From Macrostomum lignano (taxonomy: Eukaryota): 64,000 nucleotides of DNA. Below, piece by piece: positions 27,559 to 33,500 of the stretch (its first letter is position 1; each line of letters starts with the position of its first letter). The position numbers and the translations under genes were made by a program. The notes below the pieces were generated by a model, which ran no database searches, was not told where the DNA came from, and saw only the letters and a list, made by a program, of their open reading frames with translations. The stretch is taken from positions 372,001 to 436,000 of the forward strand of contig NIVC01000647.1 in assembly GCA_002269645.1 (NCBI GenBank), given 5' to 3'.

Positions 27559-30500
27559 CTGCGGTTAGTTGCCATAGCAACGGGAATTTGTATTATCAGG
27601 AAACAATTCTAGTATGTGTGTGCTCAGGCCCTCTTATCAGTGCGGGGTGCGTGCTCAGGCCCTCTTATCAGTGCGGGGTGCGTGCTCAGGCCCTCTTATC
27701 AGTGCGGGGTGCGTGCTCAGGCCCTCTTATCAGTGCGGGGTGCGTGCTCAGGCCCTCTTATCAGTGCGGGGTGCGTGCTCAGGCCCTCTTATCAGTGCGG
27801 GGTGTGTGCTCAGGCCCTCTTATCAGTGCGGGGTGCGTGCTCAGGCCCTCTTATCAGTGCGGGGTGCGTGCTCAGACCCTCTTATCAGTGTGGGGTGCGT
27901 GCGCTCAGGCCCTCTCTACCACAGAAGGGGCTTCAGATCGCGGACTGACAAACCTTAGATCCTTGCTCGTCCCGTTCAGCCGTGTGAAACACTCGCCACT
28001 TGGTGTCCTCGGTGAGGTACTCGCAAATCTCCGGTATTGGGAAGACAATCTTCTCCAAGGATCTGTCGGCGCGAACAATTTCAATCTGGGCCGTGTGCCT
28101 GGCGTAGTAATCTAACGCCTGGTCTGTGAAGCTGTCGCCGCTGCAACCGCCAGGCCTCAGTAACTCGGCCAGTTCACGATTGTGGCTAGCCAGCTGGTGG
28201 GCCAGGATGTAGATATTGTGCCCGACCTCGCGCGGGTTCATAATCTCGTCAGCTAGGTCGCTGCGGATCTGCGCGGGACCAATAAAGCGAGAGAGAGGTA
28301 ATCAACGGTGAAAGTTGTTGTGCATCAAGTCATCCGCTCATTCCTTTGGCTGTGTTTTGCTTCATCTTTAGAAATTTCTGTATCTGATAGAAAAATTTGT
28401 GGCCATTTGCTTGACAAATGTAAACTTGGCAGTTGCACAGCAGCTGCAGCAGGATTGGGAGGTGTTGCTACGTCTACCCTACAGTCCAGACATTTTTCCC
28501 CTTGCAATTGTTGTCCATTTTTATCCCTAACCAAATTTTTGATCAACAAAAAGTCGTCCAAAGAGACTTCTTGCGTTTGAAGAAAGAAAGGATTCTCGTC
28601 CTGCTTCCTTGGATTCTCGTCCAAGAAAGGATTCTTGTCCGTATTAGTCATGCTTTCTTGCTATGACTAATACGCTCGTAATTATAGGTCGTACGAAAGC
28701 GCAAAAACTTTCTGGCTGACCTGGTACCATTTCGCTGTCTGTCTGACTTGGTACCTTGTAGTATTATTGTTTGCTTCCATATTCCATTTCCATTGCGCTA
28801 ATTCTACATCAAAAACGGCGATGATGCGCTTTGATTTACGTATCTTTGACGTACGTAGGCATATTGCATGTAATTAAGCCTAGTAAATCTACCGCAATCG
28901 CACTTCAATCTACAAGAAGTGTTAAGAAAAACCACTAATGTGATTAACAGTGGCGCAAATTTTGCCTCTGTCATAGGCGATAAAAATAGATTCATGTGTA
29001 TATATACACTCGAGCTTTTGTGAAAGGCAAATCCAAAACCCATAACGTTTCTGTTTCCTAGCATACAGTTAGTAACGAATCGAGATGCAGGTCGCAAGTG
29101 AGGATGAGATCCGTAAGCCTTGCAGAATAGGCCAAGTAAAGACTTTCGCCGAATTGCCAGAAAGCGAGTTTACTGAGCTGATCAATCAAGGTACACCTGT
29201 GTTACTGCTTAGCACTCGAGACTCTGATCCCAAATGTACAAAGATTGGTGAGCAGCTAACTAACCAATTCAAATTTGACCACCAGCATGCTGATTCGATG
29301 GACAGCTACGAACAAAAAGTCGCAAAATTCTTACTTGACGCGGAGACTCCGAACTCAAGCGAAGTGGCAATTGTCCATGAGATCGAAACAACAGTCAACT
29401 GTCAACAGCCGGTACTCGGTGGTGAGATTGTGACCGAGTCCGACCTCTACAGACCGCTGTATCGCCGGAAGAACGCAAAATCAACTAAACTGTACGTGTT
29501 CCACTTGCAGTGCCCGACAGAGTGCGAAGACGAGGTCAGCTTCAACAAGACTGGTCTAAGCGATAAAAAGTCAACGTTGGAAAATAGCGAGTTTCACAGT
29601 TTTGTCGTCGGCAAGAGTGGCGCCAACTGGCAAGAAGTGCTGCGAGCATTTCACAGTCTGGACACTGTTGAAGATTTGGCTAACCAAATCTCTAAGCATT
29701 GTTGCAGTCTCCGGTCTCGGAAGATGACAGGATTGCCCAAAGCGGAATCACCGTCAACAGTCGCTTGTGAACTTGTTGATCAACCTCCATCAATTCCAAC
29801 TGTGCCGGAGGCTGCGCAGCAAGACGCATTGAATCTGCTCCAGTCGCTGCACACCAAACCATCCAGCGAGTGCGCCGAACCGAACGTATTCGTTTCAATC
29901 GTTATTGGCAAATATGCCAATTCAAAAGCCAATCGAGTCGGCTTTGAAAAAGACAAGGAGTACTTTTTGGAAATTGCGCAACAACTCGGCTGCTCGACTG
30001 ACAATGTGCACACTCTGTGCCCAGCTAATGACTACGCGACAGCGGATGAAATTAAAGATTTTCTAAGAAACATCGCCCAGGACTATAAGAGTAAGTCAGT
30101 ATTGCCTCGCTGCGTATTCTTGGCCGTCTCAGCCCACGGCAACAGAGCTGGTATTCGCGACTCTGACGATAATGAAGTCTCGGTAGAAGAATTGATGAAG
30201 GATCTAGCAAGTCTTGGCGGCTTCGTCCTGCTGCTCTATCAAGCATGTCGTGGATCGCGCTTTCACCCGATTCATCGTCAATCTGACCAGTTCTATACAT
30301 TGCCGTTGGTTTTCAGTCTGGGCTTTGAGAATCCGAAAACCCTCGGCTGCAGTTTGCCGGCGCTAATTCCCAGATCCGCCGCCATCTTTGCTAGCATGGC
30401 GAACTACGCAGCCTATAGGAATGAGGTCAAAGGCGGCTGGCTGCCCAGGGCTCTGCTGGACGTCAGCCGCCGCTCTGAATCTGTCAGTGTCAGACAGTTG

Positions 30501-33500
30501 GCCCAATTGGTGCAAGCAAGGATTTGTGAAATGTCCGACAATGGCGCAATAAGATGCAGACAAGGTGGCTCAGTGTACGAGACCAGCATCCAGATTCAGT
30601 TTAGCGCTAACGAAGGCTGTGAGGACTTTGTCATCGAGACTGGCTTAGCAACAGGAGCTCAGCTATTTTAATTTCGGCTTTCTGCTGATGCTATAAACAA
30701 AACGACTTAATGGTGCTTAATCTGCCATTTTTGTACTGTACTAGCAATTCGCACGTGTTCTTGCGCAAAATCTCGTCACTTTGTATTCTATATATTCTGA
30801 ACAGCATCTTCGTACAATAAACGCAGAGAGCCTAACGTGTACATACACACTCAGTTCTACCCAGTTCTAAAATTAAACCAGAGGGAAACCCGCCGGTTTT
30901 TTGGCTTTCGTCATGCTTTGTTTAATTAGACATAAATAGGTACGTAACTACGTAAACAGGCAAAATAATCTGTGCTAGTCACTCTCAGGATTAACCCTAA
31001 TCTACTTTACGCCTTCAATAAACTACAACATACCTGCACTATGGATAAACTATCAATCTACCCTATTCCCAGGATAAACTACCAATCTACCCTACCCAAT
31101 GGATAAACTACCAATATATCCTACCCCAATGGATAAACTACCAATATATCCTACCCAATTGGATAAACTACAAATCTATCCTATTGATAAACTACCAATG
31201 GATAAACTACCAATCTATCCCACCCCAATGGATAAACTACTAATCTACCCCACCCCAATGGATAAACCACCAATCTATCCCACCCCAATGGATAAACTAC
31301 CATTCTACCTTACCCAAATGGATAAACTACTAATCTATCCCACCCAAATGGAAAACTACTAATCTACCCCACCCCAATGGAAAACTACTAATCTACCCCA
31401 CCCCAATGGATGAACTACCAATTTATCCCACCCAAATGGATAAACTACCAATCTATCCCACCCCAATGGATAAACTACTAATCTATCCCACCCCAATGGA
31501 TAAACTACCAATCTATCCCACCCCAATGGATAAACTACTAATCTATCCTACCCCAATGGATAAACTACTAATCTACCCCACCCCAATGGAAAACTACTAA
31601 TCTATCCCACCCCAATGGATAAACTACTAATCTATCCCACCCCAATGGATAAACTACCAATCTATCCCACCCCAATGGATAAACTACTAATCTATCCTAC
31701 CCCAATGGATAAACTACTAATCTACCCCACCCCAATGGAAAACTACTAATCTATCCCACCCCAATGGATAAACTACTAATCTACCCTACCCAATGGATAA
31801 ACTACCAATATATCCTACCCCAATGGATAAACTACCAATATATCCTACCCAATTGGATAAACTACAAATCTATCCTACCCCATGGATAAACTACTAATCT
31901 ACCCCACCCCAATGGATAAACCACCAATCTACCCCACCCCAATGGATAAACCACTAATCTACCCCACCCCAATGGATAAACTACTAATCTATCCTACCCC
32001 AATGGATAAACTACTAATCTATCCCACCCCAATGGATAAACTACTAATCTACCCCACCCCAATGGAAAACTACTAATCTACCCCACCCCAATGGATAAAC
32101 TACTAATCTATCCTACCCCAATGGATAAACTACCCATCTATCCTACCCCAATGGATAAACTACCCATCTACCCTACCCCAATGGATAAACCACCGATCTA
32201 TCCTACTCTAATAGATAAACTAGCAATCTATCCCACCCAAATGAATAAACTACTAATCTACCCCACCCCAATGGATAAACTACCAATCTATCCCACCCCA
32301 ATGGATAAACTACCAATCTATCCCACCCCAATGGATAAACTACCAATCTATCCCACCCCAATGGATAAACTACCAATCTATCCTACCCCAATGGATAAAC
32401 TACCAATCTATCCCACCCCAATGGATAAACTACTAATCTATCCTACCCCAATGGATAAACTACCAATCTATCCCACCCCAATGGATAAACTACTAATCTA
32501 CCCCACCCCAATGGATAAACTACCAATCTATCCCACCCCAATGGATAAACTACCAATCTATCCCACCCCAATGGATAAACTACTAATCTATCCTACCCCA
32601 ATGGATAAACTACCAATCTATCCTACCCCAATGGATAAACTACTAATCTATCCCACCCCAATGGATAAACTACCAATCTATCCTACCCCAATGGATAAAC
32701 TACTAATCTATCCTACCCCAATGGATAAACTACCAATCTATCCCACCCCAATGGATAAACTACTAATCTATCCTACCCCAATGGATAAACTACCAATCTA
32801 TCCCACCCCAATGGATAAACTACTAATCTATCCTACCCCAATGGATAAACTACCAATCTATCCCACCCCAATGGATAAACTACCAATCTATCCCACCCCA
32901 ATGGATAAACTACCAATCTATCCCACCCCAATGGATAAACTACTAATCTATCCTACCCCAATGGATAAACTACCAATCTATCCTACCCCAATGGATAAAC
33001 TACCAATCTACCCTACCCCAATGGATAAACCACCGATCTATCCTACTCTAATAGATAAACTACCAATCTACCTTACCCAAATGAATAAACTACTAATCTA
33101 CCCCACCCCAATGGATAAACTACCAATCTACCCTACCCAATGGATAAACTACCAATGTATCCTACCTTATTGAAAAATATCTGTACTAATCTACCCTACC
33201 CCATGTATAAACTACTAATCTAGTCGCCCTATAAACTACCAACCTACCCTCAGTAATAAACGACTCACCTCTTGCTGCTGCTGCTGCTGAGCCTTGCTAT
33301 CCAAGAAGGAATCCTCATAGTAAGCAGACTTGGCAATGTCAACCAGCTGTTTAACCGGCGCCATGGTGAACATGATTCTCTCGGCAGTTTCGCTATCGTA
33401 TCGGGACTCCATCACGGCCAGCAGAGTTTTGGAAGCATTATTCTTCAATTCCAACACCAGATCCATGCGCTGCTCGCTCAATGGCGAGATGTCGTTGAGA

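Follow-up and report, generated by a model that had tools for sequence, protein, structure and literature searches.

We analysed a window of 64,000 nucleotides from the flatworm Macrostomum lignano (positions 372,001 to 436,000 of contig NIVC01000647.1), in which an uninterrupted open reading frame (ORF) at 29085..30671 of the plus strand encodes a protein of 528 residues, followed by TAA. This ORF is a real gene with a complete, intron-less coding sequence, and its product is a two-domain caspase that is specific to Macrostomum. A catalytic caspase domain (C-domain) occupies the C-terminal half and is preceded by a conserved domain (N-domain) that may be a degenerate relative of the caspase fold. 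On the opposite strand runs an IP3-receptor gene, whose last intron houses the caspase gene. A pyrimidine-tract/AG acceptor (29060-61) precedes the ATG, with an in-frame TAA in between (29073-29075), and the caspase reading frame therefore begins at 29085. The coordinates of all features are collected in Table 1.

The gene family and its catalytic domain

M. lignano holds at least five members of the family, namely the window copy, P0001, P0002, P0003 and P0126. The ORF product is 93% identical to PAA74145.1 (P0001, BOX15_Mlig012038g1) and, across 94% of its length, 44% identical to PAA52298.1 (P0002), while its exact sequence has no entry in a collection of 15 billion proteins. At the sister locus that encodes P0001 (L001, NIVC01000975.1), the same nesting of a caspase gene in an IP3-receptor gene is annotated. 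Both domains stand within one continuous ORF in two divergent paralogue types, whose N-domains share about 39% identity, so that the fusion is not an artefact of a gene model. A literature search on the locus tags of the family found no paper, and the two-domain family seems to be undescribed so far.

At both P0002-type loci (L002, NIVC01003266.1, and L003) a homeobox gene lies upstream. L002 also holds a single-domain caspase gene about 4 kb downstream of the P0002 paralogue (14459-15328, plus strand), which carries SSHG and HACRG and is matched by Pfam Peptidase_C14 with an E-value of 1e-5. The start of its domain is similar to the start of the C-domain in the two-domain family, and it is possibly a tandem relative that has no N-domain.

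The C-terminal half had been read from the DNA as a caspase domain with a QACRG motif, and this was borne out by a match to Pfam Peptidase_C14 (PF00656; residues 273-481, E 1.5e-13, 51.5 bits at a cutoff of 21.4) and by a SAHG/QACRG dyad that is in place. Aligned to the caspase-3 family with hhalign, the C-domain reaches a probability of 96.4% (E 1.4e-9), and R284, H351, Q386/C388 and R445 fall in register with R64, H121, Q161/C163 and R207 of caspase-3. The S1 residues R284, Q386 and R445 are invariant among the paralogues. Judged by these residues, the C-domain is a bona fide, catalytically competent and Asp-specific caspase. Word-indexed searches found no other caspases, even at E<=10, and a profile search with the C-domain for diverse caspases returned only a paralogue, which indicates that the C-domain is very divergent. 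Its conservation is highest in the segment between strands β3 and β4 (68.8%) and lowest in the intersubunit segment (35%).

The ratio of non-synonymous to synonymous substitution rates (dN/dS) between the window copy and its sister copy P0001, calculated from few substitutions, is 0.23-0.27 in the N-domain and 0.37 in the C-domain, but 1.06 in the linker that joins the two; by this sister-copy comparison both domains are constrained and the linker is not. The linker evolves neutrally and is variable in length. In P0001 it carries a tandem duplication of 14-15 residues (PKAESxSPVACELxDQPP) that doubles the ELxD motif. Of the candidate Asp cleavage sites, ELVD232 lies in the linker and RQSD401 in the intersubunit region; the P0002 type conserves neither, and we therefore make no claim about processing. 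Between P0002 and P0126 (L002/L003) the dN/dS is 0.73 (N-domain) and 0.79 (C-domain), with all catalytic residues kept. This near-neutral pair suggests relaxed or diversifying selection in that branch.

These data bear on whether the ORF might be a non-functional relic, or the N-domain a piece of non-coding or repeat sequence that is translated from a repeat-rich intron. Such an explanation would suit a gene that is nested in an intron, within a window full of minisatellites and with a retrotransposon, and one paralogue prediction (P0003) is indeed truncated and retains no more than the first third of the caspase domain. Nevertheless, we find it scarcely credible, given that an open frame of 528 codons is kept at no fewer than four loci, that dN/dS is below 1 in both domains and about 1 in the linker, that the catalytic residues of the C-domain are all intact and that no tandem repeat lies inside 29085-30671.

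Conservation and predicted fold of the N-terminal domain

The N-terminal region forms a genuine domain that is conserved in the family. Six residues, His98, Cys106, Cys143, Cys147, Cys206 and Cys207, are invariant among four paralogues that are about 39% identical, and His98 is the only one of the seven histidines in residues 1-265 that is conserved among the paralogues. Conservation along the N-domain follows the same pattern as in the C-domain: the β3-β4 segment ranks highest (52.7%), and residues 148-175, which comprise the β4-β5 loop and β5, rank lowest (28.6%). The residues around the two candidate catalytic positions depart from those of clan CD. His98 is followed by Glu, Lys or Gln instead of Gly, in the context VH(E/K/Q)I, and Cys143 is preceded by Gln or Leu instead of Ala, in the context L(Q/L)CPTEC. 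As to the S1 arginines of the N-domain, R45 is not conserved and the SWR loop is deleted.

It had been claimed from the DNA sequence that the N-terminal region follows the topology of a caspase, from PVLLLS (residues 38-43, 29196-29213) as the first strand and EVAIVHE (residues 93-99) to further strings at residues 112-125, 132-143 and 179-202. All of these strings are in place, and the proposed pair of His98 (29376) and Cys143 (29511), with its spacing of 45 residues, was exact. The topology itself was approached by two AlphaFold2 runs, one of the full-length protein with 3 sequences and one of residues 21-226 alone with 4 sequences. Both runs predict the series of elements given in Table 1, and the predicted order corresponds one-to-one to that of a caspase through α5. 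In a (βα)5 fold such as flavodoxin or TIR, a helix lies between β4 and β5 and one helix follows β5. The predicted hairpin after the His, the β4-β5 loop without a helix and the two helices after β5 thus argue for a caspase over a generic (βα)5 fold of the flavodoxin or TIR type.

A death-fold prodomain (CARD, DED, PYD or DD) was considered and rejected. Six or seven strands alternating with helices are predicted and no six-helix bundle, in keeping with the earlier view that the region is not a death-fold prodomain. A Pfam scan of the four N-domains at E<=10 likewise gave no CARD or DED. The weak matches that it did give (YnfU, Androglobin_V, Pdase_M17_N2 and DUF7647) are unrelated and inconsistent among the paralogues.

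The sequence-only reading had named a Foldseek search with an AlphaFold model as a check of the caspase topology. We used the N-domain-only model (predicted local distance difference test, pLDDT, 54.8; predicted template-modelling score, pTM, 0.57). The search with the full-length model also returned caspases, but the matching half could not be distinguished, and it was therefore not used for the claim about the N-domain. In the PDB, the best 14 matches of the N-domain-only model are all caspases, including procaspase-7, caspase-7, caspase-3, a coral caspase, caspase-1 and Sf-caspase-1, with E-values of 1e-2 to 4.5e-2. The probability is 0.87-0.96 for the first ten and 0.66-0.84 for the last four, the template-modelling (TM) score TMq is 0.34-0.45, and single-chain caspases align with the model over about 200 columns. 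The next fold class is the FMN/flavodoxin domain of P450 reductase (CYPOR), with a probability of 0.2-0.4 and a TMq of 0.22. A flavodoxin-type fold is disfavoured by these values; it is present among the Foldseek matches, but its probability and TM score are much lower than those of the caspases. BFVD, a library in which caspases are rare, gave a similar picture. It is led by A0A2N9QUS2 and entomopoxvirus AMV063 (E 2.4e-3 to 2.6e-3, probability 0.96), followed by an entomopoxvirus 'caspase-like protein' (E 1.1e-2, probability 0.93) and, further down, by a metacaspase-like protein, an ascovirus executioner caspase and several giant-virus caspase-domain proteins. Neither death-fold nor TIR structures occur in the top 50 matches of PDB or BFVD. 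The check thus came out in part as had been expected, with caspases at the top of both libraries, but at E-values of only 1e-2 to 2e-3. Of the two outcomes that had been named as refuting the reading, a failure to model as a caspase-hemoglobinase fold and a match to a death-fold domain, neither came about.

On the strength of the predicted structure, we favour the interpretation that the N-domain is a degenerate caspase-like domain, to which we assign a probability of about 0.55. A considerable number of observations weigh against it. By sequence, the caspase likeness that had been seen in the N-domain motifs is not above chance. With hhalign, the probability is 0.28% for the N-domain against its own C-domain, a comparison that served as a test for internal duplication, and 0.26% against the caspase-3 family alignment, which is shallow (members at 50% identity or more; the caspase-3 query is 100% identical to a database entry); the C-domain against the same family, as given above, was the positive control. 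The sole stretch aligned between the two domains pairs residues 175-204 of the N-domain with the 'GGW...' α4 helix, which is the register proposed earlier, but it is not significant. Smith-Waterman and semi-global alignments of the N-domain gave z-scores of -1 to +2.2 against 500 shuffles (control 4-5), the PDB holds no sequence match to the N-domain at E<=10, and Peptidase_C14 is absent from the Pfam scan of the four N-domains at the same threshold.

The model has its own weaknesses. Its alignment is only 4 sequences deep, the pLDDT is below 50 for residues 146-226, so that the 'p10-like' half rests on the order of elements alone, and the Foldseek matches combine PDB E-values of about 1e-2 with TM scores below 0.5 and root mean square deviations of 7-9 Å. 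Up to the fifth strand, a caspase has the same strand order as flavodoxin-like folds, and a generic α/β model could therefore drift to caspases. Moreover, His98 is predicted mid-strand, four residues before the end of β3, whereas His351 terminates β3 in the C-domain. The N-domain falls short of a caspase domain by about 60 residues, and its models contain no clear β6, the strand of the dimer interface. The full-length model (pTM 0.34) gives no confident packing between the domains, and with a dN/dS of about 0.75 in both domains of the P0002/P0126 pair, constraint in the family is not uniformly strong. Of the caspase topology that had been claimed for the N-terminal region, the order of elements and the Foldseek matches speak in its favour, while the low confidence of the model, the TM scores and the missing β6 do not.

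Alternatively, the N-domain might be an unrelated, lineage-specific α/β prodomain, flavodoxin-like or of another three-layer type, that serves as a recruitment or sensor module. In that case the caspase match would be an artefact, produced by a weak prediction. Such a prodomain would agree with the lack of sequence similarity between N-domain and caspases, with a low-confidence model and with the flavodoxin-type domains among the Foldseek matches. It would also not stand alone, as lophotrochozoan caspases often have unusual prodomains, one of them in M. lignano (PMC11463336). We consider this alternative somewhat unlikely, as caspases outrank all other folds in two independent libraries with alignments over the whole domain, and as the models lack a β4-β5 helix, have two helices after β5 and predict a hairpin after β3. 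Furthermore, the conserved His and Cys sit on β3 and β4, and no Pfam family matches the N-domain.

The search for relatives of the N-domain beyond Macrostomum gave none in a word-indexed search of 5.8e9 proteins. An exhaustive HMMER search with an N-domain profile against 1.84e9 representatives returned only Macrostomum paralogues and two LCCL-repeat proteins (P0004 and P0005, E 7e-9 and 1e-8). Kinship with LCCL was rejected. The match is confined to profile positions of about 118-178 (residues 129-178 of the ORF, 29469-29618), with the shared motif h-h-L-x-C-P-x-E-C, and the score is a sum over 4-5 nearly identical repeats, each of which contains the CPxEC motif. Beyond this motif, the query shows nothing of the LCCL signature (CPxxC ... 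YTxDSSICxAAxHxG), and Pfam reports no LCCL in it. On this comparison the match is probably chance multiplied by repeats. The CPxEC motif that is common to the N-domain and the LCCL repeats is nevertheless striking.

Proposed role and known systems

If the N-domain is a caspase-like domain, it is likely to be catalytically dead and not a caspase-type protease, because it lacks the His-Gly and Ala-Cys contexts as well as both S1 arginines. It might also be a second active clan-CD peptidase, built on His98 and Cys143 and with a specificity other than Asp, which would make the protein a two-headed protease. The invariance of both residues at about 39% identity, His98 being the sole conserved histidine, is what one would expect of an active site, as is the position of the best conserved part of the N-domain in the β3-β4 segment, and the pure decoys cFLIP and caspase-X have lost both residues. 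All the same, we regard a second protease as very unlikely: the neighbours of His98 and Cys143 are not the Gly and Ala of this clan, both S1 arginines are absent, His98 is predicted in the middle of a strand, and the CPTEC and CC motifs are more suggestive of a metal or disulfide site.

We propose that the N-domain is probably an ancient and heavily degenerated copy of the caspase-hemoglobinase fold, as its predicted structure suggests. The arginines for substrate binding would have disappeared from it, together with the His-Gly and Ala-Cys contexts, most of the L3 and L4 loops and possibly β6. By analogy with cFLIP(L) and procaspase-8, with coral caspase-X and with the tandems of separase and CHAT proteases, the N-domain would pack on the catalytic domain by way of the flexible, fast-evolving linker of 50 residues. 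We infer from the same analogy a role as a tethered pseudo-partner, which would set the activation state of the protein either by holding the catalytic domain off or by replacing its homodimerisation.

The invariant cluster of His98, Cys106 and Cys143-x3-Cys147 would, in a caspase fold, sit at the edge of the vestigial active site. We speculate that it is a retained ligand, metal or redox site rather than the product of plain decay. A further step would be a caspase-derived module in which a functional site of His98, Cys106, Cys143 and Cys147 directly gates the tethered caspase, and this version seems to us quite unlikely. The retained site might then act either as a second catalytic centre, with a specificity other than Asp, or as a zinc or redox switch. 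To our knowledge, a covalently built-in sensor-pseudoenzyme that controls a caspase is undescribed for animal caspases.

The combination of a degenerate and an active caspase domain in one chain had been taken for an undescribed architecture. This was mistaken, since precedents exist in caspase-X, separase and the CHAT protease Csx29. Caspase-X of the coral Acropora millepora (AmCaspase Xa-d, Moya et al. 2016) unites presumed-inactive and active caspase domains in a single chain (PMC4715348). Deletion of its N-terminal domain raised killing, and modelling on the basis of cFLIP and procaspase-8 suggested that the two domains pair within the molecule (PMC4715348). The flatworm protein is similar in that one polypeptide would carry a putative inactive caspase-like domain N-terminal to an active caspase. 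In caspase-X, however, both domains are recognisable as Peptidase_C14/CASc, whereas the N-domain described here is invisible to Pfam and to HH methods and is about 60 residues shorter in the comparison. The first domain of caspase-X is without His and Cys, while the flatworm N-domain keeps both as invariant residues. With a single Peptidase_C14 match and an N-domain that keeps His and Cys, the flatworm protein falls outside the caspase-X type; the resemblance is one of proposed mechanism, not of family membership, and the flatworm and coral tandems are probably of independent origin.

A pseudo-caspase partner that regulates an active caspase is also known from cFLIP(L) and procaspase-8, where it acts through the caspase-type dimer interface (PMC7586951). 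cFLIP is encoded by a gene of its own and has DED prodomains, and the homology of its pseudo-domain to caspase-8 is clear. In the flatworm protein, by contrast, the partner would be covalently tethered and death-fold domains are lacking. A single chain in which a pseudo-protease is followed by an active caspase-like domain, with one continuous sheet, is found in separase (C50, PPD-APD) and in the CHAT protease Csx29/TPR-CHAT, whose degenerate caspase-like domain has about 130 residues. These belong to other clan-CD families and have other partners (securin and Cas7-11, respectively), and their pseudo-domains abut the active domain, whereas in the flatworm protein a flexible linker of about 50 residues lies between the two. 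In size, the N-domain is close to the viral proteins AMV063 of Amsacta moorei entomopoxvirus (205 residues) and the 'caspase-like protein' of Adoxophyes honmai entomopoxvirus (183 residues). The likeness to these proteins is one of predicted models at 10-14% identity, and it gave no evidence of common descent.

Among lophotrochozoan caspases, ANK, kinase, Z-binding, ROC and PARP prodomains have been described as unusual (PMC11463336). Apart from a kinase-caspase in M. lignano, the same survey reported no unexpected platyhelminth prodomain, and the two-domain family is absent from it (PMC11463336). Like these proteins, the flatworm caspase has a prodomain that is neither CARD nor DED. If its N-domain does have a caspase fold, the family would represent a bilaterian and independently evolved single-chain pseudo-caspase/caspase, diverged to such a degree that it is missed by sequence methods, and cryptic pseudo-protease partners may hide in the 'unannotated prodomains' of other invertebrate caspases as well. 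This would be of relevance for the tuning of caspase activation by tethered pseudo-enzymes outside the CARD/DED paradigm. M. lignano is a tractable regeneration model, in which RNA interference and transgenesis are available, so that the idea is testable in vivo. If the N-domain does not have a caspase fold, the family would be one more lineage-specific caspase with an orphan prodomain.

Feature coordinates and other elements of the window

Table 1. Features of the two-domain caspase gene and of the surrounding IP3-receptor gene. Nucleotide positions are those of the window; residue numbers are those of the ORF product.
Feature	Nucleotides	Residues	Strand	Remark
Conserved α/β domain (N-domain), putative degenerate caspase-like (pseudo-protease)	29190..29729	36-215	+	
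N-domain β1		37-43		both AlphaFold2 runs
N-domain α1		49-55		both AlphaFold2 runs
N-domain β2		62-68		both AlphaFold2 runs
N-domain α2		72-86		both AlphaFold2 runs
N-domain β3		93-102		both AlphaFold2 runs
N-domain short hairpin		109-115		both AlphaFold2 runs
N-domain α3		118-126		both AlphaFold2 runs
N-domain β4, ending at Cys143		135-143		both AlphaFold2 runs
N-domain disordered acidic loop, 24 residues		144-167		both AlphaFold2 runs
N-domain β5		168-174		both AlphaFold2 runs
N-domain α4		182-191		both AlphaFold2 runs
N-domain α5		195-205		both AlphaFold2 runs
His98 codon CAT, candidate vestigial catalytic His	29376..29378	98	+	
Cys143-Pro-Thr-Glu-Cys147, invariant CPTEC	29511..29525	143-147	+	Cys143 codon TGC 29511-29513
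Acidic, poorly conserved β4-β5 loop at the place of the caspase intersubunit linker	29526..29585	148-167	+	pLDDT <50, no predicted helix
Interdomain linker, variable	29730..29879	216-265	+	ELVD at 229-232; pLDDT 23-32
Catalytic caspase domain (C-domain)	29880..30527	266-481	+	Pfam Peptidase_C14 at residues 273-481
Catalytic His351, SAHG (residues 349-352)	30135..30137	351	+	
QACRG pentapeptide with catalytic Cys388	30240..30254	386-390	+	
C-terminal tail, predicted β6-like strands and conserved FVIETGL motif	30528..30668	482-528	+	
Last coding exon of the host IP3-receptor gene (Ion_trans pore region and C-terminus)	25747..27558		-	Ion_trans E 2.9e-24
Next IP3-receptor exon, other border of the caspase-holding intron	~33236-33715		-	
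IP3-receptor RIH	38324-38953		-	Pfam domain
IP3-receptor Ins145_P3_rec	61100-61772		-	Pfam domain

The host IP3-receptor gene is complete or nearly so and extends over about 36 kb (25747-61772, minus strand); its exons carry low-complexity insertions of Ala, Gln and Ser. GACA microsatellites at 21100-21538, 48161-48729 and 60128-61226 interrupt or abut IP3-receptor exons and give rise to long fake ORFs of Cys, Leu and Ser.

The window as a whole is extremely rich in repeats, with very dense minisatellites at 31018-33173, 34912-35317 and many other places. A unit of 30 bp is repeated 66 times at 31195-33166, where it produces a spurious ORF of 360 residues, and the reverse complement of this unit is found at 34913-35317. 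An apparently intact long terminal repeat retrotransposon of the Ty3/gypsy type lies within an intron of the IP3-receptor gene (51324-55960, plus strand). It contains a gag (Retrotrans_gag) and a pol ORF of 1335 residues with protease, RVT_1, RNase H and integrase. Just downstream of it, an ORF of 570 residues (56262-57974, plus strand) has a DnaJ-like N-terminus and a sub-threshold match to TatD_DNase (22.3 bits, cutoff 27). Upstream in the window, exons at 13317-14114 and 3652-4509, both on the minus strand, belong to a CPSF100/CPSF2-like gene (RMMBL, CPSF100_C) and a C2H2 zinc-finger gene.

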